A stretch of 64,000 bases of DNA, taken from positions 20,567,700 through 20,631,699 of the forward strand of contig OZ037768.1 in NCBI GenBank assembly GCA_964035545.1. Direction: 5' to 3'. Made by a program: the position numbers and the translations under genes. The DNA is from Bugula neritina (Eukaryota > Animalia > Bryozoa). Shown one piece after another: positions 14,740 to 64,000 of the stretch (position 1 is its first letter; each line of letters starts with the position of its first letter). A model generated the notes under the pieces. That model did no database searches, was not told the origin of the DNA, and was given only the letters and a program-made list of their open reading frames with translations.

Positions 14740-14771
<32 letters not shown>

Positions 14772-15764
14772 GCTACTACTACTACTGCTACTAGTACTAC
14801 TACAGCTACTAGTACTACTACTAGTACTAGTACTACTACTACTACTCCTAGTACTACTACTTCGGCTATCACCACTGTTACCTCCCCTCCTGCTGGTAAC
14901 ATAACTGTTGACTTTGACCTGTTTTCTCATGATTTTCAGATAATAAATGAAGACACTGGAGAAATGGAAGGCAATGCTCTTGAGAATATCTGGGAAGTAT
15001 CTATCAAGAGACTAGAGTCATCAACAGACGGCTTCCCTCAGTCGTTTAGGGTCAGAGCTAAAAACATTGTGCTGGCTACTGGTACGAGTGACATTCCAAA
15101 TGTCCTGGGGGTTCCGGGAGAAGATCTCAAGTTTATCAGACACGGTGTGTCAAAAGTCAGTGCCGCACTGCAGCACATTGACAATGAGACCAGATGCAAC
15201 CCAGTGCTGGTCATAGGGGCGGGTCTTAGTGCTGCAGACGCCATATTAACTGCTCGAAAAAGTAACTGCAATGTAGTCCACGTGTTTAGAGAGACGCCCT
15301 GTGGTAACCCCGCTCAAATGCTGAAGAGTCTACCTCGGGCTATATATCCCGAGTACGTTATGATGTATGAGCTGATGTGTGGCGATGTAACAGTCGACTG
15401 GTACAAACCGTACCCTCAGTATGCGGTGAAGGCTTTCATTGACAAAAATAGAGTTAGATTAGAGAGTTTGCAAGGGCGGAGTGAGATCATTGACGTTTCA
15501 TTGGCTCTCGTTCAGATAGGGTCTAATGCTGATCTCTCCTTCATGCCTTCTCAAGGCACTAACCTCGGCGTTGTGCCTGGTATGAAGATTGAAGTCAAGC
15601 ATAACGTAGTTGATGTGGACCCTTTCACCAGCGAATCTGTCATTGAGAAGGGACTCTATGCCATGGGCCCGCTTATTGGGGACAACTTTGTCAGATTTCT
15701 CAAAGGTGGTGCTATGGCCATCACGCAACATATTCAGATGAAGAATGGAGTAATTAATATGTAG
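9396..15764 (+). CDS. OSGIN: Oxidative stress-induced growth inhibitor (OSGIN1/2-like FAD-dependent oxidoreductase); 6 coding exons
   Basis: Exons 9396-9435, 9762-9904, 10703-10900, 11691-11779, 14360-14513, 14940-15764. Motifs DVAIIGNGPSAITLSYMLSGYTPY, LEGRTSNPVALVLDQLCHPYAD, PGGVWQ, TLSRSSWMQLPDLPF, VLATG, VIGAGLSAADA, GLYAMGPLIGDNFVRFLKGGA. Confidence 0.92.
11780..12276 (+). repeat. 26-bp minisatellite (GTAAGTACATTACCAGTAAGTTCTCA, about 18 copies) starting at the splice donor
   Basis: Directly visible; variants cca/cct/cta. Confidence 0.95.
14523..14861 (+). repeat. (ACT)n-type microsatellite in OSGIN intron 5
   Basis: ACT/GCT/AGT triplet run; produces the poly-T/L/V/S ORFs. Confidence 0.95.
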
Positions 15765-17455: not shown

Positions 17456-20400
17456 CTACGCTGTCTTATTCTTCTTATTGTAGAGGTCACGAACACTAGC
17501 TGGTAGCAGCCTGTCTATAGTCCCACCCTTGATCAGCTCCTTCTCCATTCTAATGATATCTTCAACTCCCTTAATGAGTAGTTGCATGAGCTCCACCTGG
17601 TCAGATATAACAGGCATGACATACTTTCGTATCACCTCACTTGACAGCAAACCAGGGTGTGGCAAGGTGTATAAATGCATGAATCACCGGCTTTCAATGC
17701 CTCAAATGCAATTCAATGCATTGAAATGGTATTTTATATTATATTAGCTGAAGGAGAAAAAGTACTTTCTTTATACTAAAAAATTGAGTACTTCATTGAC
17801 CATCCAACTACATAAGCCATCACCATCAGCTTACAGTATGACATACATTGCTAATGAAAAATGGCAGCTACTCCAACAATTACTCATTAAGCCACCATTG
17901 ACACGGTGATTTGATGCATTGAAAGTTAGTGAGTATATTAGGCACCTAATTAATTTGTTGAAACTCAATTTAGAGTTCAGTAGTTGCGAAGGACAACTCC
18001 TAATTTATTGAACACTACTCGTGCACCTCTCTATTGCTATAACTGCTAACATAGAGCTAAAAGTTGCATGATTTATAGTTTCAGTACACAGATAGAATTA
18101 ATCAGAGAAGAGTAAAGACAGAACAGTACAAACTTACATTCTATTAACAAAACAAATATCTACACAAATGTATGGCGCCTATCATACAAACATGTAACCA
18201 ATGTATGTGCCAGTTAAATGTGAAGCTCCGTACCTCGGATTTTCCTAACCGCTGAGAGTTAGAAATATCGTAGACATCGTCGACAACTGGTGAATCAGTT
18301 CCACCAGTACCTCTCTTCTGAAGATGCATGGCTTGTAGGAACAAATCAAATCTGGGATCCTGTATATAATATAGCATGTATTATAGCATACATCGTAGAA
18401 TATATTGTAGAATATATTATAGTGTAACATATTATAGCATATATTGCAGTATATATTGTATATATAAGTATATTATTATATACATTGTCATCATTACACA
18501 GCAATGCTACGTCCTTTAAATTCCAAACATAAAAGACTGTAAATCTATCAATAAACATAATATTTGATGACAAGGGAAATATTCTGACCAGAAAGACACC
18601 ACAAGAATGTGGTCCACCTTCAGCCTTAAAAACAAAAAACCAACTATAAGCCAATTTTCATATTCACACATACAAATTGTGTCACAAATAATCATTAGTA
18701 ATGAACATGGCAGATCATTTTGTCAGAAAATTGCGACGATTAGAAACCTTTACACCCAGTAGACGTGGCACAGTAAAATTAAGTAGCCTCAGCACCCAAC
18801 CTTTGACAGCATTGGTATCTTGATGTGCACACCGGCCCGCATTCCTGTGCCCAAGTCAGCAGGACTAGTGGCCATGTAACCGAGATGCTCGTTCCACATG
18901 AAATCCCATCCTTTCTTAGAGATCTCTTGCTGCAACTAATAAACATAGCAACACATATAGCTTATACATACAATATATATCTTCATAAGCAGAGGTAAGC
19001 TATGTACTGAGATTCATATAGAATATGTATTATAATTGTTAATTTTCATACAATTAGCCCAAATGGCCTCCTAACTATAAACTCATTCCTAACAGTGTTA
19101 TACAAAGGGGTACAGCTCACAACCATTACTATTCTGCAGTCGAGCTGGCATTATTAAAGTAGACAACTCCTACTCCAGTGCGAGTAAATTTACATGGGAA
19201 AACAACTTTTTGAATTTAGCCAATCATTTTACTAGTTGAACTGTTAATGAGACCAAAAATCCTAGAAAACTTGTATATTGTTTGTAGCATTATGTGTGTC
19301 ACCATATGCCAAGGAAGAACGCAAGTTACTGCTAAAAGCACACACCAAGTTCACTCCTTTACAGTAACGCATGAACGTCTGCGCAATATTGCCTCCTTTC
19401 TGCATGGAGATGATACGAGCGTGGTCTCTTTCATTGATCCAAACTAGAAAGTTTTTGGAGTCGTTTGCCCAGAGTCCCCTGGCATCTGGCCAATCACGAG
19501 TCATGCCAGCAGCTACATGTTGAGGCGCCGTTGGCTTGCCAAACATAAATCCTTCCTATGAGATACACACACAATACTACAGTTTACAGAGTGTAGTGTG
19601 CACAAGCAATAACAATGCTACTAACACAGTAAATATGTAGTGTGTGCACGTAATAGCAATGCTACCAACACAGCGGTAAGATAATTACGTACTTCAACCA
19701 ACTTCTGATGTTCTTCAGCAGCCATTTTCTTCAAAGGATAATATCGACCTTTGAACTCTCCATGAAGAGTGTTTAGAGCTTCAACAATGACTCGCTCGAC
19801 CTCTCTCCGCTCAGCTCTAGTACACGAAGGAGGAAGTCTCAGTCCGCGAATAGCTCTTCCAGTGCGCACTCGAGATGAGAGGACAAATCTACACAAAATG
19901 GAAAATGATTAGATTTATACATCTTACCATTCTAGTGCATTACACAGAGTCACATGACTACAGTCACATGACCATACAGTCAGTCACATGACTATACAGT
20001 ACAGTCACATGACTATACAGTACAGTCACATGATTATACAGTCAGTCGCATGATTATACAGTCAGTCACATGACTATACAGTCACATGACTATACAGTCA
20101 CACGATTATACAGTCACACCACTATACAGACATAGTCACATGACTATACAGTCACATGACTACACTACACAGTCACATCTTACTTGTCATCCAGGCAGCC
20201 CCCCTTCAACTTGGTATAGTCCATGTCTTTAATATGCTTGTCCCACGGCTTATAACCTTCATGTCTTTCATCGATAACTTTATCAAAAAACTCCGAGAAA
20301 ACCTAAACATACCAGAATGGAGGTAAATAGACCCAGTTTAATAAAATACTAGAAAATTGCACTCACTAAAACTCAATGTTAAATCAACAAGCGATGATAG

Positions 20401-21065
20401 AATAGCCTGTGTCACCTCATAAGATTCCTCGTCACCGGCTATACACCCGACTTCTTTGAAATGAGCATTTGATGGGTTGTCCACTCCTGGCTGTATGCAT
20501 TCGTCAAATGTGCAGCCGTGAGGAGTTGTCCTGCTGCGTAGCTTGTTGTACATCTACATCGTGTGTGATTAGTTACAGGATTTGTATGAGTTACGAAATT
20601 TAATGATTATCTTTGGGTTCAATGTTGGAATTAAACCATGATATGATAAATTTAATTAAAACTAAAGCCAAGGGTGACTCAATGATGATCTATTAAGTTT
20701 CAAAATTTTATTTAAAACATGTTCATCGAATTCAAATAAACTGAAAATGTTAATCAACAGTTCATATAAACAACACTGATACACAGATAGTATGTACATA
20801 AAAAATCTCGCCAGTATGTAAACATTACATAGTTTCTCGTAAATAAAGTACATATGTAAATAGGAAAGCTCACCTCTGGGGTCAGCACTTGGGCCATATA
20901 GTTGCGGTGTTGCAGTATGTCCGGGTAGTTGGACCCAGCTGGGAACTTATACTGATTGCTACACGTCACTCTGGCATGCACTGGTTCACCCCCCTTGTAC
21001 GCGGTGTACGCTACGCCCCCTGCTGCCAGTCCTATGGAACTGCAGACAGCTACCAACCTTGACAT
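17456..21065 (-). CDS. CKMT: Mitochondrial creatine-kinase-like phosphagen kinase with substituted catalytic residues; 8 exons
   Basis: Exons 21065-20874, 20553-20416, 20302-20184, 19888-19693, 19555-19346, 18935-18801, 18359-18234, 17596-17456. N-terminal presequence-like leader; motifs [70 protein letters not shown]. Confidence 0.88.
19948..20178. repeat. About 16-bp (CAGTCACATGACTATA) variable tandem array in CK-like intron 3
   Basis: Directly visible, with 4-5 nt insertion variants. Confidence 0.9.
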
Positions 21066-21492: not shown

Positions 21493-21603
21493 ACTTGTGT
21501 ACTACACCAAATACTTGTGTATTACACCAAATACTTGTGTATTACACCAAATACTTGTGTATTACACCAAATACTTGTGTATTATATCAGATACTTGTGT
21601 GTT
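21493..21603. repeat. 20-bp tandem repeat (ACTTGTGTATTACACCAAAT, about 5 copies), intergenic
   Basis: Directly visible. Confidence 0.9.
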
Positions 21604-22356: not shown

Positions 22357-24882
22357 CTATGAATATGTAGGAAATCCCACCTCCTTAATTTTCCGTCTGA
22401 TATTAAGAGTTGTGTCATCCACCACATGCTGCTGATTTGTGGCTCTAATATCCTGCTCCACCTCCCTGGGCAGACGGGCGCCCTGCTCATCACCAAGTAC
22501 CACAGAGTCAGCCACAACTTTCTTATGTGCTGCGGCTGCTTCGGCAGCCATCACAGATGACAGCTGCCGAGGGACAAACCTTGGTCTGGAGTGCTGAGTA
22601 GGCGGCTGCACAGATCTAATAATAATCTCAGACATTGGCTTCAACTCGGGCTGTGAGTGAGATGTTGCCGGTTTACCATATCTATGTGAACTACTCGCTG
22701 CCTCTTGCAGTGTAGGACCAGTGGCAGCACTTGGTGCTGTTAGATGGTGCATAGTGCTATCAAACTTCTTCAGTTTGGCTGATGGACCATTAAAACTGGC
22801 TGATTGCCATGTGGCAGCATTAGTTGCATCATGCTGCCTCTTCCGAGCTAAACTCTTATGACTCACCCTCTCGTGTGTCAGCACTGAACTCAGCTCCACT
22901 GTATCTATGTTGTTCACATTGACGTGCTCCAACCCTACCAGGTTTGTTGGCTGCACCTCGGTGAACTCAAAGTTGGTATTAGTGTGTGACACACAGCGCT
23001 CTGGAACACCACTGTGATAGGGGTTAGGGAAAACTGATTGGTCTGGAAAACTACCGTGATAGGGGTTAGGGAAAGCTGATTGGTCAGTTACTGCAGGAAG
23101 AGCTGCCGTCTGTTGAATAGAAACAGCAGACGATGGTAGAGTGTGAGCTAGCCGAGATAGCCTTGGCTCTGGTCCAATCCTCGTACTGCTGTACACCCTC
23201 TCCCCCACAGGTAACTTGTGCTCCTGCTTATGCTCTGTTGACACTTTGAGCTTTTCTTCAGCTAAGAACAAATAATATCACTGATAATAAGAAAACTCTT
23301 AACAAAGGTGTCGGGAGTAAACAGCATATCGAAAGTGGTTATGAAGCTATGTGACTTTGATGCAGAGAAAGAGGCCTGTAGTCAAAGCATTGAAATAGGA
23401 ATGCCAAGGCTTTGGGTATTATCTCAACTGTGAGAAGAAAAAAGCCACCTTTTGACTGAAAAGGTAACATTTGAGTAGTTCATTGACCATCCAACTACAT
23501 AGTTCATTTGGTTCAACTGATCAGCTCACAGCAAGGCATATATTGATAACCAGGAACTGCAGTCTGAGTTTCTCAGCTACTCTAACAATTACTATCTCTA
23601 AAGCCACCAGTGCATAAATTTTCATCATCAAAAACCACTTTACAGTAGAACCAATGCATTGGAAGTTGGTGATACAAACTAGACACTGACCTAATTTCCT
23701 GCATTTTCTAGCTATTGTAATCCTTCTCTCCTGTAGCTTCAGTCTGGTTTCCTCTACCGTCTCGTACTCCGGGGCGTAACACACATGTAGAATACCGCCA
23801 AAAAACTCCAGCTCATCTAGTCTCCTCTTCGCTGTTCTAAAAAAAACAAATTTTGTTATAAAACATACAAAGTGTTCATCTGATGGACACGAAAAGCAAC
23901 TCATTTAAATATTTTCAACAAAGAAAAAAGAGAAACTGTAGAGTTTTATAGCCTCAGTATTTATCACAGAAAACTCTGCTCATACAAAATACAAATTCAT
24001 AATACATGAAATAATAAAATAACAATAAATGTTACTGCAGAAGTAAACACTTACTTCAAATAACTAAGCAATATTAAATGGTAAACCAATCTGCACAGAA
24101 GTATTTTTCAGAAACTCAATTTATACTTTGTCTGTTTCTGTCTGAACTTGAATTCATAGCAAAGAAGTAGCACGCAATGAAGAAGTACCTTGCAGAGTTT
24201 ATATTGTCATATTTAAGCAGGTAAGTGCTGGTGAAAGGCTCTGCAGGATAATCATCCAGCACTGAAAGAGCAGTTATAGTTCCATAGGCTGAGCAAGTAG
24301 CATGGAGTTCTTTAGTCAAGTCAAGCTGAGGAACTTGCAACAACAGCAGATATTGTGATTCATCACTCACAGAGTACACCTAAAACAAACACTCAGTCTG
24401 TGATCATGGCGTGACCCTTTTCCCTCACTCTTAGTAGTCAGTAGTGAGTAGTAGTAGTTAAACTAAAGCATGTTTAATTTTATACTTATAGTAGCAAGCC
24501 TATTTTAATTCAGTAATGAGTAATGACTAAGTCTAATGATAAGATTGAAACTGCCCTTTCAAACTAGTCATCAGGGGTAAGCTACCAAGACTATCACTAA
24601 GAGTAAGAGCTAAGAGTAAGAGCAAGGACTTTGAATGATCAATTAGACTCAGAGTGAGAGCCTCAGTCTGACTCTGAGTTGAACTTCATCTTCATACTTT
24701 AACCTTAAGGCAGATCTTAACACAGATTGCAAGAAAGTTCCACCTCAACTTGAGGTAATCTAAGACTTAGAGTTAGTCTTGAGTTCATCTTGTGATCTTA
24801 CTTTTACTGAAGTATACTTTCTGCCTTGCCGATATTTAGGACGATTTTCACAAACATCGAGTTTGATGTGGTGGGAAAACAT
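22357..24882 (-). CDS. RBM48: RNA-binding protein 48 (minor spliceosome component)
   Basis: Exons 24882-24802 (MFSHHIKLDVCENRPKYRQGRKYTSVK), 24379-24189 (VYSVSDESQYLLLLQVP...DDYPAEPFTSTYLLKY), 23836-23691 (AKRRLDELEFFGGILHVCYAPEYETVEETRLKLQERR), 23261-22357 (contains PRFVPRQ). The last exon may instead splice at 22381 to a short terminal exon 22039-22022 (AMGQM*). Confidence 0.92.
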
Positions 24883-26073: not shown

Positions 26074-29000
26074 CTAATCGGTTGAGAAATATGAGGAAGT
26101 AGGAGTATTCAGCGAGGAGACATCAGTGTGGAATTTTCTCATGTATGACTCATCAACCGTCTCCATTTGGTGCACTGGATGAGTACACAGAACTTCTTTC
26201 ATTGTTTCGGGAGGTAATAAACCTTTACAGATCTTATCGAGCACCACAAACATTGGAAACCTGCAGAAAGGATATTATTTTAGAGTTGGAAGTTTCACGG
26301 TAAAATTCTATTTTAATCTATTCTAAAACTAGCATAAAAACTACACAGCATATAAAGGGCACAGACCTACAGTAGAAAGTATACATTCACAATCGATCCA
26401 TGGATTAATCTCAACTAGATCTCGGCCATTTTTATTTTTTCGAAGACGGGTGAACTAAATATATGCAACTGAATTTATACCTATCCTTCACATAATAAAA
26501 GGCAGCTTTGAAAGATCAAAAAGATCATGTAATAGAAAAATGATCAAACTGAACACATTTCTCAGATGAAATGGGCCAATATTTGAGATTAATCCATGGA
26601 ATACGGTGATTATTCTCACTATGACAAAACATTCTCTACCAACTAACTATACAGACAGGCTTTTGACATAGACTTACGACTTCTCCAGATTTCGTTGCCT
26701 CAACATAACATTGACTTCAGTAGCTGTAGGCGGGCCTTGCAGTTTCTGTCCATTCAGCATTTCCTTCTCTAGCACTTCAATACTCTACACAAATTTCATG
26801 TTACAGTTTATTTTCCAACTAGTAATACAAAGAAGGTTTTTTACTTACTTTATGCTATATTAATCACTCAACTCCCTATAAAACAATTATGTTATTCAAT
26901 AAAAACAATACATTGTATAGACTAGGTAGCAGAAAGTTTTGCTGCTTATATTTCTAAAAAGAAACTTTAGCTGTAATAGAGTTTGTAAAGTTATCTTTCC
27001 ATCAGTAAATTATATACACAGAGGTGATGGTGACACCATAGCACTCTGAGGATAGCTAGACAATAATTAGCTCCTCATGGATACATCTTCAACCTGACCT
27101 ACACTTTTATTAGTACCAAAATTGTATTTTTACAGTGCTTCCTTACAATAAACTTTTCTTAGTCTAAAGTACAACATTGTGGAGCTTCTAGCTGCAACCA
27201 ACAAGTTCTAGCACTACTGAGAACAACGTAGCACCTGCCCACCTTGCCAGTTGTTACCATAGCAGCAGCCACCTTTCTGTTTCTGCCTCCGTAACACGTG
27301 GTGACCAAGTCGGCCACGCCACAACTTTCCAGGAAGGTAGAGGGTTGAGTGTTTTCATAAAATGTATCAACAAATTTGATCATCTCCATAAGACCGAGCC
27401 TTATAACTGCTGCCTTAGCGTTGTCGCCGTAGTCTAGTCCGTCCGCAATTCCAGCCCCTAGCGCTACTATATTCTACAATAGTACAGGCAAAAATGATAA
27501 TACAGGTGATACTCTACTAGGACATGCTATACAAACATGGCTACTCACTTTACAATACGGTGACTCGCTTCACTCACTATACAGTAAAAAACTGCTCGAT
27601 TGACAGGACTAGATGGCAAGGCTTTGCATGAACAAACGAATTTTATGCATTAGCAGTGTCTCAATATTGAATATTTTACAGAGTTTCATTACAGTTGCCA
27701 ATAGATACTAATATAGAGAAAGTTTTGCTTATCACTACAACAGGACACAGGTTGTGAAAGGTTACAGAAAACTTATGTTTAGGAGGGAGGAGAGGCTAAG
27801 CATTTAGTGTTGAAGCACCACTGCAGCCTGATTGAAGCTAATTTTATATTGTTTTCATTGATAATATGCAGTAACTGAACACAGAGAATATGGGAGAAGA
27901 CTATGGAAAAGAGAGAAATGAGATGAAGGGGAAAGTTTTGAACAACTCAAGCTGAAAGTGAAAACATGCAAAATTCAACAGCCTTACTGGACGATTGGTT
28001 CTATAAGCAGCTCTGAGTGGGGGTGATTAATGTACCTTCTCAAGTTTGGAGTTGGGTTATTGAAACCCCAGCTAAACTTTGAGAACCACAAACTACTGAA
28101 CTCAGTCACCCCCCAACTCTTACAGAACAGCTTACAGAACCATTCTTACTGGACACAAAACCGATAGCCTCATCACCTACATGTCTTATAACAGAGATGG
28201 TACCTGCCTTCAAAGCCCCGCAGATTTCAACTGTTGCTGCATCTTCAACAACCACTAGTCTGAAATATTCAGTCTGAAGAAGTCTTTTCAGCACTAAGCC
28301 ATCCGCTAATACCTTTGCACCTATAGAAAAGTTATATAATCTATCCATCTTTACTGCATCACCAGTTAAGCTGACCAATGAAACTTAATGCTAAATACAA
28401 TTTCAATAAATACAAACTGCACAACAACCTATTGAGAAACTTAAATTAAACAAGGAAAATCATTGGCTTTTGTATATATGCATTATATAAACAGCACTGA
28501 CCGACTATACTTATCAATAGAATATAACAGCAGTTTAGGTGATGCAATAAATTCATACCTATACAACCCTAATATACAGTAGATATTAGAGCCTATAATA
28601 CCAGCAATTTTATAGCAGAAGATTAACTTGCCAACTGTGGCATTACAACACCAACCTACCAACTGTGGCCTCACAGTACTAACTTACCAACAGTAGCTTC
28701 ACAATATTTCTCTTCAGCCACTTCACCAGCCAGGTTAGCTCCCATAAGAACATGGCAAGGGATTGAGAGACACTCTGTTATAATGTCGGAGATGAGAAGC
28801 AACCCACCTCCCTCCTTAACATCTAACCCCTACATGTCCAAGTAAAAATACAGCAATAGAAGTGACAGGTGCTTGGCAACACCCAACAGTTTCAGTTCTA
28901 AATCTCAGCATACTGAAAGCTAATATATTAGTATGAAATTTATAGCTTATTAGACAAGTTTTAATTTTGCATGAGTGAGCAAAACTTCAGCGTATGTAGG

Positions 29001-32260: not shown

Positions 32261-33915
32261 TAACCAAGCAAGTTTTGCTCAGCGTGATTTTGCCTACAGC
32301 TGTCTAATATTATGAGTGTGACAGTTGCAGTATTAGATTTAGTATTACTATAAGTATAAGTATAAGACTAACTTTTAAGTATTCACTTTCAGTCACTAAA
32401 TCTTATACTAATACAGTGATATTATTATAATAAAATTATATTATTGAATCTATTTATAAATAATAATACATATGTATATTCATATTGTATATGTGATATA
32501 CTTAGTCTTATAGTTATACTTATACTTATAGTTATTGTTATACTTATAGTTATACTTATACTGTTCTAGTTATACTTATACTTATACTTATACTTATAGT
32601 ATTAATTTACTATTAGTATTAGACTATTAGTATTACTATTACTATTAGTATTAGTCTATAGTTATAGAATATAATATTACTATTGGTAATAGTAATATTA
32701 TATTCTATAACTATAGACTAATAGTATTACTAATAGTAGTAGTATTACTATTAGTATTACTAGTAGATTTAGTTATGCTTGATCTTATATTTATAGTTAT
32801 ACTACTTATAGTTTAAGTTATACTATTAGTATTAGAGTAATAGTAGTAGTAATTCACTAATAGTAATACTAATAGTAATAGTAATATACTAATAGTAATA
32901 ATGGAAGAGTTTAGACCTAGAGTGAATTACAAATAATCATTATAAGAATAAATATTCATTGTCACTGATAGTTCAGTGGTAGTGATGCTAATAGAGTTAC
33001 TGCAAAGTGTAAAGTCATGGTGATACTGATAGTCATAATCATAATCAGTGATAATGATAATGATGATCAGGATATCGGTATAGTTAGTAATACTAATAGT
33101 ATTAGTAATACCTATTATTAATATTTATATTAACATTTATTTCTAAAAGTGATTACTATTGTGATCATGATCTGTTAAGATGTTCATGCTCTACTGTGAC
33201 TAACAACTCATTCCCGCTACACTCTGTCATACCAAACTTGTCGGACACTGTGATTGTGACTGTCAGTGTCAGCCATATCATTACAAGTATAAAATTATGG
33301 CAATCTATTCACTCTTTCAGTTTCACATTGGCTCATTGAGTTTGACTATACCTATTTTCATTTATTTTGGTTACTAATTTTATTTGAATTATTTTTGTAT
33401 CAAGTAATTAACTAATAATATTCATGATAAAAGCTCAGTAAATGTGATTTAGGAAATGCATACATGTTTAGAAATTAACTAGTGTTGCATGGCAAATTTT
33501 AGTTTCAGATATTCATGCAATCAATATTAGTTAGTATATTACTATATAGTTATCGTAGTCTAAATAGTTCAGTGGTTCAAAGATTTAGTTCAAAATAGAC
33601 TTCATATATAAAAGTATAGTTATAGTACAGTTATGCTACATCAAGGGCAAGGGATATCTTTTTTATTCTACTATTGGGTAATTCTTTAAGAATTTGTCAT
33701 AGTTGAGTGGTGGTAGGTATAAAAATAGGCTAAGAGACTTCATTATATGTGGGCTAGGTACATTCTTAATTGATGAGCCATTATAAATGCTGTTAAGTTG
33801 GCAATATAGAAACTGGCATATTATTTGGAATCTTTGTATCTAATAAACCTCTTACACAAGTGTTTCTTTTTATCCTACAACTTGTACCTTTACACATCAT
33901 CTTAATTTATAGAAT

Positions 33916-36900
33916 ATGGCTGACTTCCGAGGCATGGTTTCTTTTGAAACAATAGCCAAAACCTATCCAACAGACACCAACATTGATTGTGTGTATGTGA
34001 TGAAAGAGGCTCACAATCCGTCTGCATATGACTGGATTGGTCTGTTCAAAGTGGGATGGTCGAGTATCAAAGACACAGTATACTACCACTGGGTTCCGTT
34101 ACCTGACAGAACGGCAGGGGAAGAGTTTCGTGGGACCTTAGTCTTTCAAGGTAAGCTTAAGTTCACATCTCTAGCAAGAAGTTGACTTGACACGGGTTTT
34201 AGAAGGGGCCCAGCTGTTTTTCTGTGATATTGGCTGATTAAACCAAATTGAAAACAGCCATTGTCACACCTACAGACTGCTATGATGATGATGGCTGAAA
34301 TTTACTTGAGTGTTAGTCATCTAACAGAATGTGTGTTCTTGTAGCATCCATTCTTCCCAAAGACGATGGCGAGTTCTACCAGTTTGCCTATTTCAACGGC
34401 AAGAAGAAGATGTGCGGAGCTAGTTCTCCCTTCCAGTTCAGAGCTCCAAGAAGTGAAGACTTTGTGGAAGAAGATATGCCAGATGACGAGGAAATGTTGC
34501 TGATAACCACCAAACAGGTGCAGCTGGAGGAGAATCTCAATAAGTTGGAAGATGAGCGAAGAACATTGTCTAAGGTGTGATACTGTAACTTAGCGTTGAA
34601 CATTGCGTAACTGAGTAATTGACATTGCTTTGAGCTTTAGTTGTTCATGCCTTTCCATGATTATGGCTTAGCTGTTTAGGGTTAGGTTTAGTCCATGGAA
34701 GCTACTAAAGAATTTAAAATTGTGTTGCTCAGCTTTCTCTGTGGAATCCATTTAACCTGCTTTGTTATTGTATACAGCTTGCAGCTGTTTGATTATAAGG
34801 TTACTGTATAGCTTTGTGTAATCAGTTGCTTGTTGTCACAGGGTTGTAGTTAGTACTTTCTTCTATTTTTATTAGAAATGAAGCTTTATTACGTAACAGT
34901 GATGGGGGACAGTGGAAAAGATCAATTTTCATCCCAGTGATTTTAAAACGTAATTTTAATTGTACATAATTCTCCAAGATTAAGGGCCTTTTAGTTAGAT
35001 TTCATATTATGTGTTGATCTTTATGTAAACTCTCACTAGGTAAAATTGTCACATCTTGCTGGTTTCACTGAACTTTCTAGAAGCATATAGCTGTTTGTAC
35101 TGCTAGCTGTATTAAGGTGCTTTTGTTCCTAGTAGTGATTACTGTCTAATAGGTAAAAATAATACTGCCTTTTGTCCTCAAAAGTTCAGGTTAGAATATG
35201 CATTAAATGGCTTTATCTGCCACTCTATTGGTAATTTTGTTCGTTCCATGGTAGCACCACCTTCTGCCTAGAAGGTATTTCATCATGGTTGTCATGCCTA
35301 TTCAACTTCCTTATCACAAGGGAAACTACTAGTTTATTTTCTAGTGAAATCATAATCTTTATTTATGATAACTGCCAGCTGAGTATGATTGTTAGTTATG
35401 TTAGCTCAAATAGACCTCTTAGCTTGTAAACTAAAACTGCTATCTTTTGCTTCCATGACTGCCATAGCTGCGTATTGATTTTCCATTATTATGTATTCAC
35501 CTAATTATTGCATCATGCTTGATGAGAAAAAAGTTTAACTTGGGAATTTCCACAAACAAACTACGTATTGTTCTTAATTTCATATAAGCAGCGTCATTGC
35601 TGGGGTGTTGGCTGTCACATAAGCGAAACTTTACAATTACTCCCCAGTATCGTATTAGTAATATTCATGTAGCCATGATTATGATTCACTCGCTGATACA
35701 AAACTGGAAATTACAATTAGCATTTGATGATGTAACTATTCTGCTGTAACCTCCAGTGTGATTGAAAGCTTAGTCCACATTCTAGAATCTAGATTGATAA
35801 GGCTTGTTGTTAGTTGGCCTTGAGTGGGTGATAGCTTTTCATCATCAATATTTACCATACCTAGACACTGCAGTTTAGTCTTACTAGGCAATTCCTGGCC
35901 CGTCTCCAAGAACAACTTATAATTATCTTTGCCAGTGTCTATTATTCCACCTTATGTTCAGTTATCACAACTACTAGTATATGCAGTCCGACTTAGTCAT
36001 ATTCATAATGTGAGGGTATGTATAATAATGGCTATTTATATCTGGTGTTGTTAGACCTGTGAGGAGCTAAGTGCAGAGAATAATGAACTACGAACTCAAT
36101 GTGACTCTCTCAAAGCAAGACTTGAGGAGATGGAGTTTGAAAGAGATAGCATACGCATATCCTTGGAGGTAAATACTGTGTGAAGATGCAATACTATGTA
36201 ATTTTTTGTTTATATTATCCTGCTGGTTGCTATGGTTACAGTAATGCCACCTGATCTTGAGTAACATTGGGAGATGTGAAGGGATTGTGCAACTGAACAG
36301 ATTCGATACACTCCATTCAACTTTACTTACATATTTGTTAAGTAGTGGCTGATAGAGGAAATTGTGGTGCAGCCCTTCCTACTTCACTAATATATGTACT
36401 CTTACTAAAATATATAGTATATTCCTATTAATTTACATATTTATTCCAACGAGTATATAACTGTGCTTAGGCTCTGAAAGTCGAGGCAGAAGTTTTAACC
36501 CAAAAGGCTGACGACTCTGAGAATACTGCTGCAGGGCTGAAAGAGGTGAGTGGAACTGAGCAAATTTCACACAAGCCTGAACAACTATGGGTGTTGAAAT
36601 TAGTAAACCTTTAATAACCAGCGATGTGTTTCACATGTAATGCTTTGTTAGTAACTATTGCAGGATATGAAAGGCCTACATCTTGTTTTAATCACCTTCC
36701 TTTAAAGATGGTTCCATCTAATCAAGGTATGTGTGCATTTTTCTGAATGATGACTGTGTTGTTTACAGGCAATAGAGGATGCCGAACAGAAGAAGGCATC
36801 AGCTGACGAAAAACTGACCGAACAAAGTGAGAGAATTCTCCAGTTACAGAATGAGTTGGACGCCGTCAGAGGTGAGGTGGAGAATGTAAAGCGGGAGAAA

Positions 36901-39900
36901 GAACTGCACTACCATCACTTCACTGCTGAGTCGTCTTCTAAACAGGAGGCCTTGCGTCAAGTTAGTTCTTTGCTGACACTTCCCATAACTGTGAAATATT
37001 GGGAATTGGTTGATTATCCTTTACTTTTAGGTATGACCTATTTGGTGATTAGTTATCTGGCATGAATAAATATTTATGCCAGATAACTAAGCATGGTTTT
37101 ATCGGAATATGGTAAAATGTTTACATTGTGTAATCACCAGTTAGTATTTGCCATGTTTTCAAAATGCTGCCTAGGATAAAAGCAGAAACAATTTCAAATG
37201 TGGTAGACCTACTTAACTAGTTGGACATTCCAGATTGATGTGAAGTAAAATCAGGTCATGCTTGTGTACTGTAATGTGCAAAAGGTGCCAAGTACCTACA
37301 GAATTCTACATGCTGGGGGAATTCACAGAATAGCTTAAGATCCGACTGAAAATTGCGACATAAAAATTCCCAATTGACTCAACAATCACATAAAACATGC
37401 TGGCTCTGATATTTAGTGATTGGTGACTGCTTATTGCCTGGCTCTACCCCCTCATTTTCGAACAGGGCGGATTCACTGTTCAGAGCATACAACTCCTAAA
37501 ATAAATAATTATCTGTCGAGCATTAGTTCGCCTTGGAACTAATTTATGTGCTGTTACAGAATTTCAGATTTGATGAGATTTTAGTATTAGTATTAAGTGT
37601 GAAGAAATTACGTAAAACGTATTTCAGGTGCAGGAGCTCAAACAGAACCTGGCGGAAAGACAGATAGATGGTAATCGTGTACAGATGCTGGAGGCAGCTT
37701 TGCGAGAGTCTGAGAAAGACCTTAAAGACATGAGTGAAGAGTTGGAGCTTCGAGAGGTTTGTGTGCAGTCTGTCTGTGTGTCTTCCTTTATGTGTTGGAT
37801 TTGTATGAGTTTATGGGCATTAGTAGCTGTCAATTCCTGAGACGGTAAAATCCTTCTATGAACAGCTCGGAGTTAGGAATGACTGAGTGCAGTAGTTTGG
37901 GATTCTTGAGTTTGGAGTTGGAGGTTTAAGTTGGAACTTTGAACTCCGAACTCGAGAATTCTAAACTACTGCACTCAGTCACTCCCAACTCGGAGCTGTT
38001 TATAGAATGATTTGAGATAGTATAGTAAGTGACTTGCACACCCGCCTCTGCTGGTACCAAGTGGTGCCTGAGTTTATGGTCAGGCTGTCATACGAACCAG
38101 TAATTAAGTCATTTGTGGTGCTTACTGGCTACTAGTGGTTTCTAGTCTTTCGCAGACACACTTGGTAGTTTGGTTAGAGCTATGCATTTGCAGCTCTTTT
38201 CGTCTCCAATAAGAAAACATCAGCAGACTATAACATGGGAGCAGCTGTGGTCTAGGGGTTAGAGCGTTTGCCAAGTAAGCACGAAGTTATGGGTTCGAAC
38301 CGACAAAGGCCATTAGTGATGTTAGGAAAACATCCAGTCATAATTGCTCCTGTGCCTCATCTGAATAAGTCTTTAGCCCTATTTAACAAAAACCTTCCGT
38401 CGGGGTTTCTCACAGGGATGGTGACTATAAACTTGTGTGAGTAGACTATAACATAATTGTTGACCAACATCTACTATACTTGAGATTCTATGTTGGCAGA
38501 AATTATGATGTGCAATAAATTGTCTGGCAGAGCCAAGCTGTGGTACTCTTCACATACATTGACCTCTCTTACTCTATACTGTTACAGAACAGGCTGTCGG
38601 TGCAGAAGGATAAGCTAGATGCTGTAGAAGCAAGACATCAGTTGGACAAGGAAGAGCTGAGTGCATTGAGTGCCACTCTGGAGATTCTCTCGCAGAAGAC
38701 CGAGACTGTCCAGGGTGAGAACTATGAGTATAAACAGAAAGTAGAGGAATTGAGAACGAAGCATCAAACCGAAAAGGCCGACTGGGATGTGACACTGGAG
38801 GAGCTAGCAAAGGTGTGTCCTCGTCACTCGCTTTATTCTTGTCTCGCATTAGAAAGTTTAAGATTTGGAGTATGTGCATCAGAAAAGTAGGTTCATTATA
38901 AATGCATTATGTCATATTGTACGGTGCCTTTTTTTATAATTTTGCTTTCCTGCAATATAGAATATATTTTGCACCATGCAATGCTACACAATTCTTATTG
39001 GAATCAGTACAGTTTTAATAATGCTAACAGTGTCAAGTGACTAGCTTTAGAGAACAACAATATACAATCAAGCAATGTTGATGGTTCTTATTTACTGTAA
39101 CTTCTGATAAAGTAAAGCTTAGCTCTGTAGAATGGAGACTCCAGTGTGCCAAGCACATGTCATGTCATGTCACTCAAATTGGCAACACTTGCAGTTAGTT
39201 GTATATCTTAATGACAGATCTGGTCAATGCCAGGTTTATTAAGTTTGTCAATTTATCACATTGCCACTTGTTTTCTACCTTTCATGGGCAGTATTCATTT
39301 TGTGGTCATCTATGATACTTGTGTATTGATTAATTATATTGCGTGTATATAATAAAGTATATAATTAACCCTTTATATAGGAAAAAAAATGGTTTACTAC
39401 TATCTAAGATATTTCATGCAATACATGTGATATATATTTATAATATACATCACATGTTTGCATAAAATATATAATATAATATATAATCTCATATAAATAT
39501 ATATGGTATAATAATGTATAACGTTTACCTTAAATATAGGAAAAGAATGGCCTGCTATCCAAGATATGTGAACTGACACACGCAATGGAGCAGATGAAGA
39601 AGCAAACCGTTGATATCGCCGTGCTGAGTGAGCAGGAAGCCGGAATGGTTGCGCTGAGGACGGCATATGACAATGTTAAAGCTAGACTGGCAGAGAAGGA
39701 GAAAGAGTTGGGTGTCCAGCGTGTCAGAGCTGTGAGTAATCTCATAGGTTCCGGCTATCTTGTTCTATGTACTCAGTGAACTGGCCAGTTGTCGGATAGT
39801 TGGATGTTCAAAGAGTAAAGAAAACTGTACTTTTTATTGCAGGCAAAGCTGAAGGATGCGGACAAACAAATCCAAGAGCTGCAGCAAAAAATTGCAGCCG

Positions 39901-42788
39901 GCGAACAGAATTGGAAGAGAGCCAACCAGTCACCTGGCAAAAGTATGTTGATGGGCAGTGAATTTCTTCTCTCAGTCATTTTCTTGTGCGTAGAAAGCCT
40001 CTCAGCTGCTTGAGATTAAATCTTTATATGTTGTTGTGTACGTTGTAGGTGCTCAGTCTGGTGCTGCCAGCGAGGGGACTACTCCTGGAAGAAAACCCAG
40101 TGATGGTAAGTGGTCTGGTCTCTTATAGGTTTTGTCATGATTTGCATCATTTCACAAAAGGCGTACGTATTTAAGCTATATGGTACTTCTTATTTTCTAA
40201 GTTTACCAGAAAATAGTACCTTTGCGCGTTCTATATTAATAGTACTATACTTTAATATGTTGACTGTGTGTAAGAGAAATTATTTATTTCAGTTTTGTTT
40301 AAAAATATGAAAAGGTGGTATTTTTTTAACAGCTGGTAGGTAACGATATTTATTTCTGGTGTTGTCTAGTTTAACTAGTAAAGCCCCCCTCACAAGGTTT
40401 CTACACACCCTGTGCTTGGTGAGCATAGGCAACATCTTTTCTTACTCTGTTGAAGTCTTGAGGTGATCAAAGTGCAGTAGTTTTACTGTTGAAGTTGTTT
40501 TCAGCTGCGTCCAAGGATGAGCTGACCAGAGAAGAGCTTCAGAAGATGGTTGAACAGCTGAACTCTGAGCTGGAGCTGAGAACTCAGAAGAAGGATAAGT
40601 ACAAAATCAAGTACTTGGAAGAGAAACAGCGTGCAGCTGCAATGAGAGACTATTACAAGGTGAGAGTGGAGTCCTAAATGTGCTTAAATAGTAGTAGTGT
40701 AGTAATAGTTGCAGAACTAATGGTAGTGATGGCAGTATTAGTAGTGGTGGTACTCGTATTAGTGATAGTAGTAGCAGTAATAGTAGTAGCAGTACTGGTG
40801 ATAGTGGTAGCAATACTAGTGGTAGTAGTACTAGTGAAAGTTATTAAGTTTGGTGTAGTGACACTTAGCGAAGCAGTTGTAGTGTTACCATCACCAGTAG
40901 TATGACTGTAACTAGCTGTATATTGTCACTGGTATATGGTGACCTCACAGGTACTAGTAGTGATAGATGTAAGGCCACCTATAGTTCTCGTAATAGCTGA
41001 GAGATAGTTCGATAGGTATCTTTTTAATGAAGTATTTTACTCACAAATTTATTTTGTTTCACAGGAAGAATTGGAAAAGCAAAACGCCGAGCTGTTTCAA
41101 CTGAGGAGACAAACTTTCAAACCCTCTTTTCGAAAATCTCCATCAAGTCCTGTAAAGAAGACATCCACTAAAGTTGAAAGACCTGTGAGTTTTATGGATA
41201 ATTCATTTACTAGTAAAGTTTCAACTTCTTCTAATGACTCATTCACTTAATCATTATAAATAGTTAATTCATGGCTCAGATAATGCTCAACCGCCCTTGA
41301 AGTTTAATGTTGTACTTTATTATTTCTTTGTCTGTAAGCAGTTGTTCTAATTTATTTTCTGTAACTTCAAACAATATTTATGTTTTTTCTTGAGGTCAAG
41401 TATAAAGGAATAAACACCATTTTAGTCATATAGAATATTATAATGATGGCAGACCATATTTGTTCTACTGGTAATGATTTTTGCTTTTCGTGATTATTTT
41501 TTCTGTTTTAATGTATTGCTCAAAGTCGTTATAAATGTTAAAGTTACCTCTCTTTTTTAATGTTGCTATGGTTTAGTTGTTTTAGTACTTCGGTAAAATT
41601 TTATAGATTGTACTATAAATAGAATTAAGAGTTATCTTATCAGTTATTTATCAGCAGTGCTATGATATGCCAACTATGGAACATCAAATTCTCCCGCCAA
41701 CTCCTAACTGGCTCCTATCACATGACCTGCAATATCAAAAATATGACCTTTCTAGCACCTTCTTGGGTTAAGATCCCACTGCCATACTTAGATATAGTAT
41801 TTGCTTACTCAATTATTTGCTGTCACCTATCAAAGTGTCTATGTTGTGGGTGAGGTGTCGGTGTTATAACCTGTTTACAACTCATGCAAGGCTCAGTCAC
41901 ATGCTAAAATCTTATTCATAGGGAATCAGATTAATTTTCTCTATTAAATACATATTTTCATGTCGTAGGTGGTTGAACCTGGAAATGGCGGCAGCTCTAA
42001 GCAGCAGCTCAGCTCGCCGAAAGGCGCTGCTAAAAGTAATGGTAAATATCTTCTACCTGCAATTCTACAACCTGCAACACAATTTAGCAGTAATCTTATT
42101 TATACAGTTGTTTTATGTCCCAATCATTACAGTCTGGGTTATAATGCTGTAGATTCTGATGCCCAAAATCTGATAGAAGAGATGGGTGAGAAGGTTAAAT
42201 TGCCAGCTCCTATTAAGCCACAGGTAATACCAAGTTCTGCTAGTGGCGGTGAAAAAGACCAGCTAAGAGTGAATTTAGACCCGGTTGTAACCAGTCCTAC
42301 CCAAAATGAGCCCCCTGCATTTCCCAAAGCTAAACTACCAGAAGTGCTTGTCATGAATAGACAAGATAGCGATGATGAAAATGAAGGAGCAGAGAGGTGA
42401 GCTGAGGTTTTCGTGTATTGTGAACTGCTTAAATTTTTTAACATCTTATGCATTTTGTTGTGTACAGTTTTTCCATTAAATTATCAAATTGCGTTTCTAT
42501 AGATTTCATGATGCTCAGGATAACATTCTGACTAGTTTGGACAAGTGCTTTGTCTGTGACAAGACCTTTTCGTCATCTGACTCCCCACAAGCTCGCAATG
42601 ATCACGCCAATGGCCACTTTGACCCAGCAGTTGACCAGAACTCTCTTGATCTACAGAAGTGCCCAGTCTGCACTCAGGTGTTCCCGAAAATTTCTGTAAC
42701 ACAGGAAGCTTTTGAGCAGCATGTTCAATCGCATTTCGCTGAGACCAATTACACACCCCCTTTGACTCGTGGGGAATTCAATGCTTAA
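33916..42788 (+). CDS. TAX1BP1: TAX1BP1/CALCOCO-family selective autophagy receptor (SKICH - LIR - coiled coil - 2 UBZ fingers); 15 coding exons
   Basis: Exons 33916-34150, 34345-34574, 36055-36168, 36471-36545, 36769-36960, 37628-37756, 38588-38812, 39540-39731, 39843-39942, 40049-40105, 40505-40659, 41065-41184, 41969-42041, 42153-42396, 42503-42788. SKICH motifs DWIGLFKVGWSS and EFYQFAY..GASSPFQFR; CLIR-like DDEEMLLITT; CFVC..H..H and CPVC..FEQHVQSHF. Likely co-orthologous to CALCOCO1/2 and TAX1BP1. Confidence 0.9.
37854..38007. mobile_element. Foldback MITE-like hairpin (about 70-bp imperfect arms)
   Basis: TTCTATGAACAGCTC..TGACTGAGTGCAGTAGTTT.. / ..AAACTACTGCACTCAGTCA..GAGCTGTTTATAGAA; second copy at 27999. 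Confidence 0.75.
38238..38447 (+). mobile_element. tRNA-derived SINE, near full-length
   Basis: GGGAGCAGCTGTGGTCTAGGGGTTAGAGCG (A box)...GGTTCGAACC (B box) plus a body shared with two copies at 2.5-3.0 kb. Confidence 0.78.
40688..40835. repeat. Degenerate (GTA)n microsatellite
   Basis: GTA/GTG/GCA triplet run just after the donor at 40660. Confidence 0.85.
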
Positions 42789-59770: not shown

Positions 59771-59784
59771 AGTGTATATCAAAG

Positions 59785-60651
59785 ATGGAGACTGAAAACG
59801 CTAGAATGCAACCACCCCCAGTAGAAGGTGAGCGTAGAAATGCTGTTAATCCTGTGAATCATGAAGGAGAAGAAGCTTATAGACATTGCTTGAAAGCTCC
59901 CACCTTTACTGGGTCGGAAGATGTCGAACAATTTATACAAGAATTTAGAGAGGTAATGGAAGTTGCTCAATGGCCGCATAGAGTGGCCCTCATTCAATTG
60001 CGGAGAGCGGTGACGGAGCAAGCCAAGCCGTACGGAGTGGGAACGGACGTAGACGGCATACTGGCTGCGCTGCGGGCCCGTTTTGGCACCTCCGTCATAG
60101 ACGCTAGGACCAAGCTGGCGAGATTGTGCCGCACCCCGCGGACCTCGCTGCAAGAACATGCCGCGACGGTGAAGAAGCTGGCGCAGATTGCATATAGCGA
60201 TCTGCCAGCACAACACCAAGAGCGTTACACTTATGACGCCTTTGTCCAGTCCCTAAACGACCTGGGCCTAGACCATCACCTACGAGCTAAAGGGATAACC
60301 AGAATAGAGGATGCCCTGAAGGCTGGAGAAGCTTACCTGTTGGCTACCCAAATGCATCGAGCACAACGGAACCCACCAGTAGTTGGAGTCAGCGCTGCTC
60401 GGGCTACGACAGGTTCCGAAGCCCTCCCGCTGGAAGCCGAAGTGGACCGTATGGTAGAGATGCTGGGACAATTGGTGACCATTCTGGCCGGTGCTGGCCC
60501 CGGTCAGGCCTTGCGGATGCCCCCAACACCTGTGGGGCAAGGCTGGAGTAGCGCTGATCAGGACCAGGGACAGAAAGGACGACCCCAATACCAGGGGGCG
60601 TTAAACTGTCACGGCCCGCGGACACTCTCCCTCCCCGCGGGCCGCAACTAA
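59785..60651 (+). CDS. gag: Gag (capsid-like), 288 aa
   Basis: KAPTFTGSEDVEQFIQEF...W...ALRARFG...SLQEHA capsid-type pattern, immediately after the PBS. Confidence 0.88.
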   Translation: METENARMQPPPVEGERRNAVNPVNHEGEEAYRHCLKAPTFTGSEDVEQFIQEFREVMEVAQWPHRVALIQLRRAVTEQAKPYGVGTDVDGILAALRARFGTSVIDARTKLARLCRTPRTSLQEHAATVKKLAQIAYSDLPAQHQERYTYDAFVQSLNDLGLDHHLRAKGITRIEDALKAGEAYLLATQMHRAQRNPPVVGVSAARATTGSEALPLEAEVDRMVEMLGQLVTILAGAGPGQALRMPPTPVGQGWSSADQDQGQKGRPQYQGALNCHGPRTLSLPAGRN

Positions 60652-60906
60652 AGGAGTATGGTGGAACACGCCGTCGTCTGTCCGTACGGACACGGCGGAA
60701 CATTCTACCCGAGTGGCAGGTACCACGCAGGACTAGTAGGCCCGCACAACGGCCCAGTACCTTTTCCCTGCCACTCGCTAACCGGTTTCACCGGTTACCT
60801 CGGGAGGAGGAGCCCGCCACTGAAATGGAGCCAGAAGGCCCAGTGGAGAGGCCCAAACCCCGCCGGCACCAACCTCGCCGCCGGAAGCCCCGTAAACCAC
60901 GGGTGA

Positions 60907-63900
60907 AACCCCCGCCGTCCTGTCAAACCAGGACAGCACATGCGGGGGGGGGTGAAAGTACAACCACATGGAGAGAGCTATTTCCTACCCGGAAAGGTGG
61001 CCGGCAACGCTGTCACTTTCCTGCTCGACTCCGGTTGTACTACCAACCTTCTCAGCCGTAGAGTCTTTGAGGCACTGCCCCGCCGGGACAGGGATAGAGT
61101 ACGACCGTATACTGGAGAACATGGCATCCTGGCAGACGGGTCATGTATCCCCTTTTATGGTATTATCGAGCTCCCTGGGCGTGTCCGAGATCAGGCTGTA
61201 CAGGAGACCTTTATCATAGGTCAACTGGAGGAAGATGCTATCCTCGGCATGCCCTTCTTGAAGCAACACCAGTGCCGAATAGATTTTAGTAAGTCGGTGG
61301 TGCTGATGGGCGGGCGAGAACTCGCCTGTGTGGATAAGTTTGGGCGTCCTCTGGTGGGCGGTGTTCAGGTAGTTCGGAACTGCACCGTACCCGGACGCTC
61401 CAGAGCTACTATCCACTGCCGAGTGAACAGCAACCGGATAGCCAGGCTCGGGGTCGTTGAAAGCGCGCACGAAAAGATCCAACTCGCCAGTAGTTTAAAC
61501 CGACTAACTGAGCGAGGGGAGGTCTTAGTGCAGTGCGTCAACCCCTTTACCGAGCCCATTGAGCTCCCAGCTGGGTCAATGCTGGGCCGGTTCCATTCCG
61601 TCCAGGAAGAGGACGTGGGCCCGTCGCTGGGTGACGCGACGGAGGCACCCCCTCGACACCCTATTCAGGGACGAGGGGCAGTCCCGACACATCTCCGGGA
61701 GTTATACGAAACAGCCAGTGGCGGCTGCGCGAGTAACAGAGAACGCCAAGCTATGGCCAAGTTACTACGCGACTACGGTGATGTGTTCAGCAGCGGGGAG
61801 AATGACGTGGGACTGACTGGAATTGTCAGACACGAAATACCGCTGACTGCAGGGACAGTCCCTGTCCGGCAGCCCACGCGCAGGCTGGGGCCGGAGAAAG
61901 AGAAGGAGGTTAGCCGACAAGTACGGGATCTTCTGGACCGGGGACTGATAGAGCCCGCCCATAGTGCGTGGAGCTCGCCAGTCGTACTGGTCCGGAAGAA
62001 AGACGGCAGTTGGCGGTTCTGTGTGGACTACCGCAAACTCAATAGCGTAACCATACAGGACGCCTACCCTCTACCTCGTATTGACGAGTCATTGGACGCC
62101 CTAGCCGGCAGCAAGTACTTCAGTACGTTAGACTTGCTAAGCGGCTATTGGCAGGTTCCTCTGAGTCCCGACGCCCAAGAGAAAGCGGCGTTTATTACAC
62201 GGGACGGTTTGTGGAAGTGGAAGGTGCTGCCCTTCGGGTTAACCTCCGCCCCAGCCACCTTCCAGAGGCTGATGGAACAAGTCCTTAGCGGACTCCATTG
62301 GAAGACACTGCTGGTCTACCTCGATGATGTCATCGTAATCTCCCCAGACTTCGAGACACATGTCAGTCGTCTGCAGGAGGTTTTCGAGAGACTCCGAGGT
62401 GCCGGTCTTAAGCTCAAACCTTCCAAGTGCGCTCTGTTGCAGCCGGAGGTCAAGTACCTGGGGCACGTTGTCGGTCGAAACGGCGTGGCAACGGATCCCG
62501 AAAAGGTACGGGCAGTAGAAGACTGGGTCACCCCTCAAGACTTGACCGGACTCCGGGCTTTCTTGGGGCTGGTAGGGTATTACAGGCAATACATACCAGA
62601 CTTTGCGGGCATAGCCCAGCCGTTAAACCGGCTTACCGCAAAGGGAGTGACGTGGCAGTGGACTCCAGTCGAACAAGAAGCGTTCGACCGCCTCAAGGGC
62701 TGCCTCCTAACGGCGCCCATCTTGGCCTACCCAGACCCCACTCTGGAGTACATCCTAGACACAGACGCCAGTGACCAGAATGTTGGCGCTGTGCTGTCGC
62801 AAGTGCAGGAAGGCCGAGAAGTAGTAGTAGCCTACTACAGCAAGTCTCTCTCTCCCGCTGAACGAAATTACTGCACTACCCGCAAGGAGCTGCTGGCAGT
62901 AATCAAGTCAGTGAAGCACTTCAGACCATACCTATATGGCAGGAAGTTCCGGCTGCGTACGGATCATGCCTCGCTGATCTGGTTGTGCAGGAGAGCAGAG
63001 CCCTCCAGTCAGGTCGCCCGGTGGCTCGAAATCCTAGCTGAATTCTCGTACCGGATCGAACACCGACCGGGCAAGAGACACAGCAATGCAGATGGGTTGA
63101 GTCGCCGACCTGACGGAGGTTGCAAACAGTGTCTCAACATCGAGAGGAGGGATGGAGGTCCCCCACGATGCGAGTTGGAGACGCTGGCTCATCACGGAGC
63201 ACCGTTTGACTGGGATCAAGGTCAACTCAGGCAAAGAGTTGATGAGTCCCCGGAGGATGTGCAAAACCTCCGCGCCAACCCTGTACTGGCCGGTAATGTT
63301 CGAGAGCTGAAGAAGCTCCAAGAAGAGCTGCCGGGAGTCGTGGCAGACATCTACCGGGCCAAAAGGGAAGGGCGACGACCCAGCGAGGAACGCATACGAC
63401 AGGGATGCGCCGAGTTCCGGCTATACTGTCAGCGTTGGGACTCGCTGCGGATCGGGCAGGATGGGTTGCTAACCATCTCTCTAGCTGCCAGCGGCAGACA
63501 CCCGGAAAGGAAGAGGGTAGTCTGCCCCACAGCCATCCGCCGTGAGTTGATTTGGGATACTCACAAGCAGGCCCACGCAGGGGTCAAGCGAGTGATATCC
63601 AAATTACGACTCCGGTGGTATTGGCCGCAGATGGAGCGTGACGTCCGGCTCAGAGTCAAACAGTGTGAGATCTGCCAGGCCAGTAAGCATAGCCGCCCCC
63701 CTGGTGAAGCAGGACGGCGGAGGCTATATGCTGGTAGGCCCTGGCAAGTAGTCGCTGTAGACCTGGTCGGACCCATGCCCCTGACCCCCAGAGGCAATAA
63801 TTGGATCCTAGTACTAACCGACCACTTTACTAGGTGGGCGGATGCTCTGGCTATCCCAGATGCATCAGCCCCAACAGTGGCCAGGGCACTAGACCAACAT

Positions 63901-64000
63901 GTATTCTGTTATTTTGGGCTTCCCGAACAGATACACTCTGATCAAGGCGCTCAATTCCAGTCTCAACTGATGAGCGACCTTTGCCACCTCTGGGGAGTAA
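60907..64000 (+). CDS. pol: Pol polyprotein (protease, RT, RNase H, integrase), open to the window end
   Basis: FLLDSGC (about 61018), WRFCVDYRKLN, LPFGL..APATFQ, YLDD (62317), LDTDAS, HAG..CEIC zinc finger, AVDLVGP, IHSDQG. No stop seen in this frame after 60906, and none implied by the ORF track. Confidence 0.95.

Follow-up and report, generated by a model that had tools for sequence, protein, structure and literature searches.

What is a mitochondrial creatine kinase (MtCK) gene kept for when the two residues most closely tied to its catalysis have been replaced? The question is raised by a gene on the minus strand of the window, the whole stretch of 64,000 nucleotides of Bugula neritina DNA analysed here. 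An earlier note, made from the letters of this DNA alone, had described an intact MtCK-like gene with both catalytic residues exchanged. It had suggested that the product is a selected ATP-binding or membrane-bridging scaffold, a regulatory subunit of hetero-oligomers or a kinase for a substrate other than a guanidine. We have followed these proposals through the structure of the gene, its relatives, the selection acting on it and the other phosphagen kinases of the same genome.

Results

Structure of the gene

The gene lies at positions 17456-21065 (minus strand, as are all of its parts) and has eight exons, which join to 1257 nt encoding 418 amino acids plus the stop codon. There is no internal stop and 7/7 introns are GT-AG, as the earlier note had claimed. 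Residues are given in muscle CK numbering, assigned by alignment. Exon 1 (20874..21065) carries the ATG, a presequence-like leader and the start of the mature protein; by alignment, the leader has a basic start, a hydrophobic stretch and an HAR motif like the leaders of invertebrate MtCKs. Exon 2 (20416..20553) encodes the N-terminal domain with a remodelled guanidino-specificity loop (T59P, H66N, I69F and T71E). R96 is kept in exon 3 (20184..20302), and R130 and R132 (SRVRTGR) are kept in exon 4 (19693..19888) together with the dimer-interface segment. Exon 5 (19346..19555) contains H191G, L201Q, L202H and the sequence NERDH (E232R, codon AGA at 19429-19427), and it keeps W228, E231, D233 and R236. 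The octamer Trp (GWDFMW), R292 and H296 are kept in exon 6 (18801..18935), which also holds C283S (codon AGT at 18866-18864), S285A and N286D. Exon 7 (18234..18359) keeps R320, the RGTGG loop and D335 and carries V325T and D340Q. Exon 8 (17456..17596) encodes the C-terminal helix, a Lys-rich tail and the stop codon. NERDH for NEEDH and TSPADLGT for TCPSNLGT are found in the 418-residue model where they had been reported beforehand, and the same holds for the other altered motifs, RGTGGTD among them, and for the retained motifs. Minisatellite-like repeats occupy 19940-20170 in intron 3, and similar simple repeats occur in other introns and upstream at ~21500-21600.

Searches were run with single exons; the joined protein was used in local alignments and trees. 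PF02807 was found in exon 2 (E 4.5e-15) and PF00217 in exons 5-7, all above the curated cut-off, which places the product by sequence in the ATP:guanido phosphotransferase (phosphagen kinase) family. When the exons were searched against the PDB, the best single-domain matches were creatine kinases, and those of exon 6 were mitochondrial CKs. With the octameric MtCKs (Chaetopterus, Siphonosoma, Lingula and vertebrate CKMT1/2) the product shares the PF02807/PF00217 fold, the leader, the octamer Trp, the basic C-terminus and the ATP-site arginines, at 53-60% identity.

Splicing and selection

Three RNA-like runs, drawn from three studies, yielded contigs that together cover all seven splice joints, and the joint between exons 1 and 2 (20553/20874) is present in all three runs. 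The RNA-like contigs lie on exons only, and a single contig (X18) covers exons 1-8. The lineage from which the runs derive differs from the window gene by ~4-5% in the exons. Genomic contigs of the second lineage (L027, L036, L037 and L038) keep the splice sites. Both substitutions recur there: the AGA codon of E232R is present in 4/4 independent second-lineage contigs and the AGT codon of C283S in 3/3. The sole T>A change in the RNA-like runs is located at 17442, in the 3' untranslated region; the Ser codon (18866) is therefore not reverted to Cys in RNA. For the Arg codon, support from RNA is only indirect and comes from matching per-exon difference counts. A-to-I editing would not bring back the canonical residues, since from AGA or AGT it gives Gly and not Glu or Cys.

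Comparison of the window gene with the second lineage over 314 codons gave 40 synonymous and 6 nonsynonymous differences (Fisher p 5.5e-22). The dN/dS of 0.037 (dN 0.008, dS 0.22) spans a short time because dS is only 0.22. Purifying selection on the gene is strong, and the NERD and Ser codons are kept in both lineages. Two of the six amino acid differences, A94P and H228Y, are located in pocket-lining segments (p 0.07, not significant). The branch of the gene is long in the trees, which may favour an artefact, a restoring RNA edit or a decaying pseudogene. The codons and splice sites shared by independent contigs of another lineage, the low dN/dS and the spliced contigs led us to reject, to the extent that sequence allows, an assembly error or a young pseudogene, and this group of explanations is left with almost no probability. 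The checks that the earlier note had proposed on codons, RNA and dN/dS therefore favour a gene that is expressed and under purifying selection despite the loss of its catalytic residues.

One-sided remodelling of the active site

E232 and C283 are invariant across 150 canonical single-domain CKs, and R or S occurs at these positions in 0/150. There are 158 near-invariant columns among these 150 sequences, and 31 of them are changed in the bryozoan gene. The changes affect 10 of 13 guanidino-site residues (T59P, H66N, I69F, L201Q, L202H, E232R, C283S, S285A, N286D and V325T, each a state that is absent from the 150 canonical CKs), 1 of 16 nucleotide-site residues (H191G) and 20 of 129 other invariant sites. 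The change rate of the guanidino site differs from that of the nucleotide site (p 2.6e-4) and from that of the other invariant sites (p 8e-6); these p values are optimistic because the site lists, which draw on knowledge of CK transition-state structures and on PMC5133464, were compiled after the changes had been seen.

The Glu232 of the NEED motif that marks active phosphagen kinases is Arg in both the window and the second lineage, and Cys283 of CPSNLGT is Ser, with S285A and N286D beside it. The creatine-specificity positions carry I69F and V325T, and the loop NPGHPF reads NPSNAHF. The five arginines that bind the triphosphate (R130, R132, R236, R292 and R320) and the Mg-linked E231 are all retained (for their roles, PMC5133464), which agrees with the earlier observation that the ATP-site motifs survive. 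Two other points of the earlier note carry less weight. H191G, which it listed among the changes, does not indicate that catalysis is lost: P0354 and P0355 (L048-L053), two orthologues that are canonical in other respects, carry it as well. The suggestion that the charge reversal at position 232 would suit an anionic ligand is weak, since T71E and N286D, which lie within or beside this pocket, offset the gain from E232R.

Mutants of other CKs give an indication of what these changes would do. In human uMtCK, the E227A substitution, equivalent to position 232, leaves no detectable activity and E227D causes a 260-fold loss (PMC5133464); CK-B with C283S keeps ~4% of its activity and acts as a dominant negative (PMC2265766). 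Because these mutants lose activity, normal guanidino-kinase activity of the bryozoan gene product seems very unlikely.

Ancestry and locus

The window gene falls in a bryozoan MtCK clade (support 100/99) together with Watersipora subatra XP_067932710.1 and unnamed marine sequences. The canonical bryozoan relatives (the first half of the Watersipora model, P0305, P0354 and P0356; L041-L043) are 65-67% identical to it and, where covered, share its intron positions and its neighbours. Unlike the window gene, they keep NEEDH, TCPSNLGT, NPGHPFI and RGTGGVD. In L042, the canonical orthologue shares both the introns and the tail-to-tail neighbour of the window gene. This neighbour is a pyridine nucleotide-disulphide oxidoreductase whose last coding exon in the window is located at 14898..15761 (plus strand) and which we take to be OSGIN-like. 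The upstream neighbour (22360..23904, minus strand) gave no match in a Pfam search and is presumably RBM48-like; it matches L047:323-967 with 40% identity (E 6e-28) and is thereby syntenic with the Watersipora MtCK pair. The clade with canonical relatives and the shared neighbours identify this as the bryozoan MtCK locus and show that the changes arose within bryozoans. The mitochondrial CK origin that the earlier note had proposed is thus borne out by the tree and by synteny on both sides of the locus, and by the presequence, octamer Trp and basic C-terminus recognized in the alignment. L041, one of the unnamed marine sequences, carries a sample label that leads to a metagenome study of plastic debris in which bryozoans predominated (PMC5069773). 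A single-sequence AlphaFold prediction of P0305 reached a pLDDT of 40.

Elsewhere in the window, exons of an NAD-dependent glycerol-3-phosphate dehydrogenase (PF07479) are located at 27162-28384 (minus strand). The stretch at 33913-42785 (plus strand) encodes a SKICH domain, a coiled-coil and terminal zinc-finger exons, as in autophagy receptors of the TAX1BP1/CALCOCO type. An LTR-retrotransposon-type element at 59773-64000 (plus strand) contains protease, reverse transcriptase, RNase H and integrase, and its open frame runs past the window end.

Degenerate copies in Watersipora and elsewhere

XP_067932710.1 (L047:10001-27904) is an 842-residue RefSeq model labelled 'flagellar-like'. Judging from its sequence, it seems to be a fusion of two mitochondrial CK genes that lie in tandem. 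Copy 1 is a canonical MtCK with a stop at 14760-14762 and an AATAAA poly(A) signal at 14940. Copy 2 has a new ATG at 15260 and, like the window gene, a leader of its own. It is degenerate, and so is an exon pair from a marine metagenome (L028), which reads NRNDH. The MtCK-like exons of this kind from marine metagenomes (L028, L029, L039 and L040; P0150 and P0286), with NRNDH and a five-residue deletion, group with copy 2 (SH-aLRT 96).

Copy 2 and L028/P0150 resemble the window gene in having an Arg in the NEED motif followed by HA(R/K)II and in their remodelled specificity loop, and 16 invariant positions are changed both in the window gene and in this type, compared with 8 expected (p 0.001). 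The differences are also substantial. Copy 2 reads NRDDH, with the Arg one position earlier (231 and not 232, as also in L028), keeps Cys283, and has lost the RGTGG closing loop and the octamer Trp. It has Lys in place of R236 and R320, carries a five-residue deletion and has lost 7/16 nucleotide-site residues; its identity to the window gene is 55%. Grouping of the window gene with copy 2 was neither demonstrated nor rejected (p-AU 0.125-0.45), grouping with copy 1 was rejected (p-AU 0.014 and 0.049) and grouping with P0354 was weakly preferred. The window gene and copy 2 have 8 private states in common (p 0.08 against background).

A search of JGI metagenomes with the DNA pattern W-x-N-x-x-D-H-A-R found six loci and no further NERD carrier; because all six are canonical NEEDH, HAR alone is not diagnostic. 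Among proteins of 39-122 residues, a search for exon 5 homologues gave a fragment from the same species as the only close match. NERDH recurs in P0030 and P0066, which are multi-domain proteins. At the level of sequence, degenerate phosphagen-kinase domains are not rare: many large unnamed proteins (P0002-P0149) contain three or four of them, in which the NEED motif and the Cys have been replaced in various ways. Like the window gene, the degenerate domains of multi-domain proteins, among them the C5 second domains described below, have lost NEED glutamates or the Cys. They have usually lost ATP-site arginines too, whereas the window gene is a stand-alone gene with an intact nucleotide site.

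Other phosphagen kinases in the genome

Whole-genome searches, for which two Pfam families, exon 5 and the MtCKs of a sipunculan and a bryozoan served as queries, matched two places, the window locus and a cluster on contig C5, and found no canonical MtCK. No second MtCK remnant was found at the window locus either, and the window gene is the sole mitochondrial-type phosphagen kinase found in the genome. The canonical paralogue that the earlier note had asked for was thus not found in its own genome, and canonical syntenic orthologues were found in other bryozoans. The cluster (G000:C5:15366900-15410600, L019-L025) consists of three phosphagen-kinase genes in tandem. Each encodes two domains, of which the first is canonical and arginine-kinase-like and the second is degenerate and lacks the Cys. 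Within the first of these genes, the stretch that separates the two domains can be read as introns plus a linker exon. In the first domains the specificity loop is shortened and the V325 position holds a Glu, which we take to be the mark of an arginine kinase. These domains show 50-52% identity to the window gene and belong to a different clade.

These searches bear on the idea that the product is a regulatory or dominant-negative subunit that hetero-oligomerizes with an active phosphagen kinase. The dimer-interface residues are kept, the C283S mutant of CK-B is a dominant negative (PMC2265766), and Watersipora carries an active MtCK in tandem with a degenerate one. The regulatory subunit of MtCK hetero-octamers suggested in the earlier note is left without a partner, because no canonical MtCK was found in the genome or at the locus, and the only active-looking kinases are the divergent C5 domains. 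We regard such a subunit as quite improbable.

The same genome searches could be read in favour of a slow but real guanidino kinase, acting on creatine, glycocyamine, arginine or an unknown phosphagen, for which a reduced activity is sufficient. It would be the sole mitochondrial phosphagen-kinase gene found, GO terms for phosphocreatine stand out in Bugula larvae at the swimming stage (PMC4192642), and single mutants of other CKs keep traces of activity (C283S ~4%, PMC2265766; E227S/D ~0.5%, PMC5133464). We consider this reading improbable. Both key residues and eight other pocket residues have changed together in the bryozoan gene, an Arg at 232 should repel a guanidinium group, and the larval GO terms rest on sequence annotation, with the C5 genes as another possible source. 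A search for AGAT, the enzyme of creatine synthesis, with PF02274 and three short motifs gave no real match, which is a weak hint as the search had no positive control.

Discussion

The reading that we favour, with moderate confidence, is that this cheilostome bryozoan has kept a nucleotide-binding pseudoenzyme for the membrane-bridging role of MtCK. The product would be imported into the intermembrane space and would form the MtCK dimer and probably the octamer, as suggested by the retained octamer Trp, dimer-interface residues and basic tail. It would bind Mg-ATP or Mg-ADP through the five arginines together with E231, W228, H296 and D335. Creatine and other guanidines would not be phosphorylated, judging from the mutants of other CKs, since neither the base E232 nor the C283/S285 thiolate system remains. 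As a structural guess, Arg232 may occupy the vacated guanidinium pocket, where S283 and D286 would hold it as an intrinsic mimic of the substrate. What selection maintains would then be the second job of MtCK, in which contacts with cardiolipin and VDAC/ANT link the inner to the outer membrane, possibly tuned by nucleotides, and the buffering of phosphagen would fall to the first domains of the three C5 genes, which resemble arginine kinases. Octamers of MtCK reach across the intermembrane space, interact with VDAC and cardiolipin and stabilize contact sites, which is a structural role (PMC5909653). Expression, purifying selection and the intact ATP site support the scaffold option of the earlier note, and we also count in its favour that a second bryozoan lineage, Watersipora, retains a degenerate MtCK copy. 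A purely structural role is weakened by the finding that MtCK protection of hepatocytes against permeability transition needed creatine (PMC5909653).

The near-perfect ATP site fits phosphoryl transfer or ATP hydrolysis equally well, because a scaffold need not keep the site, as the loss of 7/16 residues in Watersipora copy 2 illustrates. The product could thus be a neofunctionalized phosphotransferase or ATPase in which the ATP half works and the acceptor is a small molecule or protein side chain other than a guanidine, or in which Arg232 itself forms a phosphorylated intermediate. The gene retains E231, D233, the RGTGG closing loop and the full set of five triphosphate arginines, and its nucleotide site is far more complete than that of copy 2. 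Two base changes are required to turn E into R, both lineages are fixed for this replacement, and an Arg recurs one position earlier in the same motif of copy 2 and L028. CKB has also been reported to act as a protein kinase, although that signal is lost with C283S (PMC10173731). Furthermore, no general base remains at position 232, H66, which helps the loop to close, is lost, and the pocket charges roughly cancel (E232R against T71E and N286D). A94P and H228Y hint at relaxed constraint in the pocket segments, at a p value of 0.07 that is not significant. We think this alternative unlikely, and it is the rival to be taken most seriously. Also unlikely, in our view, is the broader proposal that the fold has been re-tooled into an ATP-dependent enzyme or switch of the intermembrane space with a non-guanidino acceptor, in which Arg232 takes the place of the guanidinium, possibly as a phospho-arginine intermediate, and which took over from the creatine shuttle in this lineage.

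In the literature we searched, which covered few subscription journals, we found no description of this gene, and none of a stand-alone mitochondrial CK, present in single copy, whose active site has been lost on the guanidino side only and which is strongly constrained.

Our study provides a comparison set for the phosphagen kinases: a selected MtCK, the only one found in its genome, with a rebuilt guanidino site; active orthologues, which at 65-67% identity can serve as controls; and, in Watersipora, a copy that has degenerated in another way. The RefSeq 'flagellar' CK model of Watersipora is corrected to an apparent pair of tandem mitochondrial genes. In vertebrates, the bridging and catalytic functions of MtCK are hard to separate, and the bryozoan gene is a natural test of the two. 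If its product is catalytically dead yet conserved, a selectable non-catalytic function of MtCK would be shown; if it is active, it would represent new chemistry for the family.
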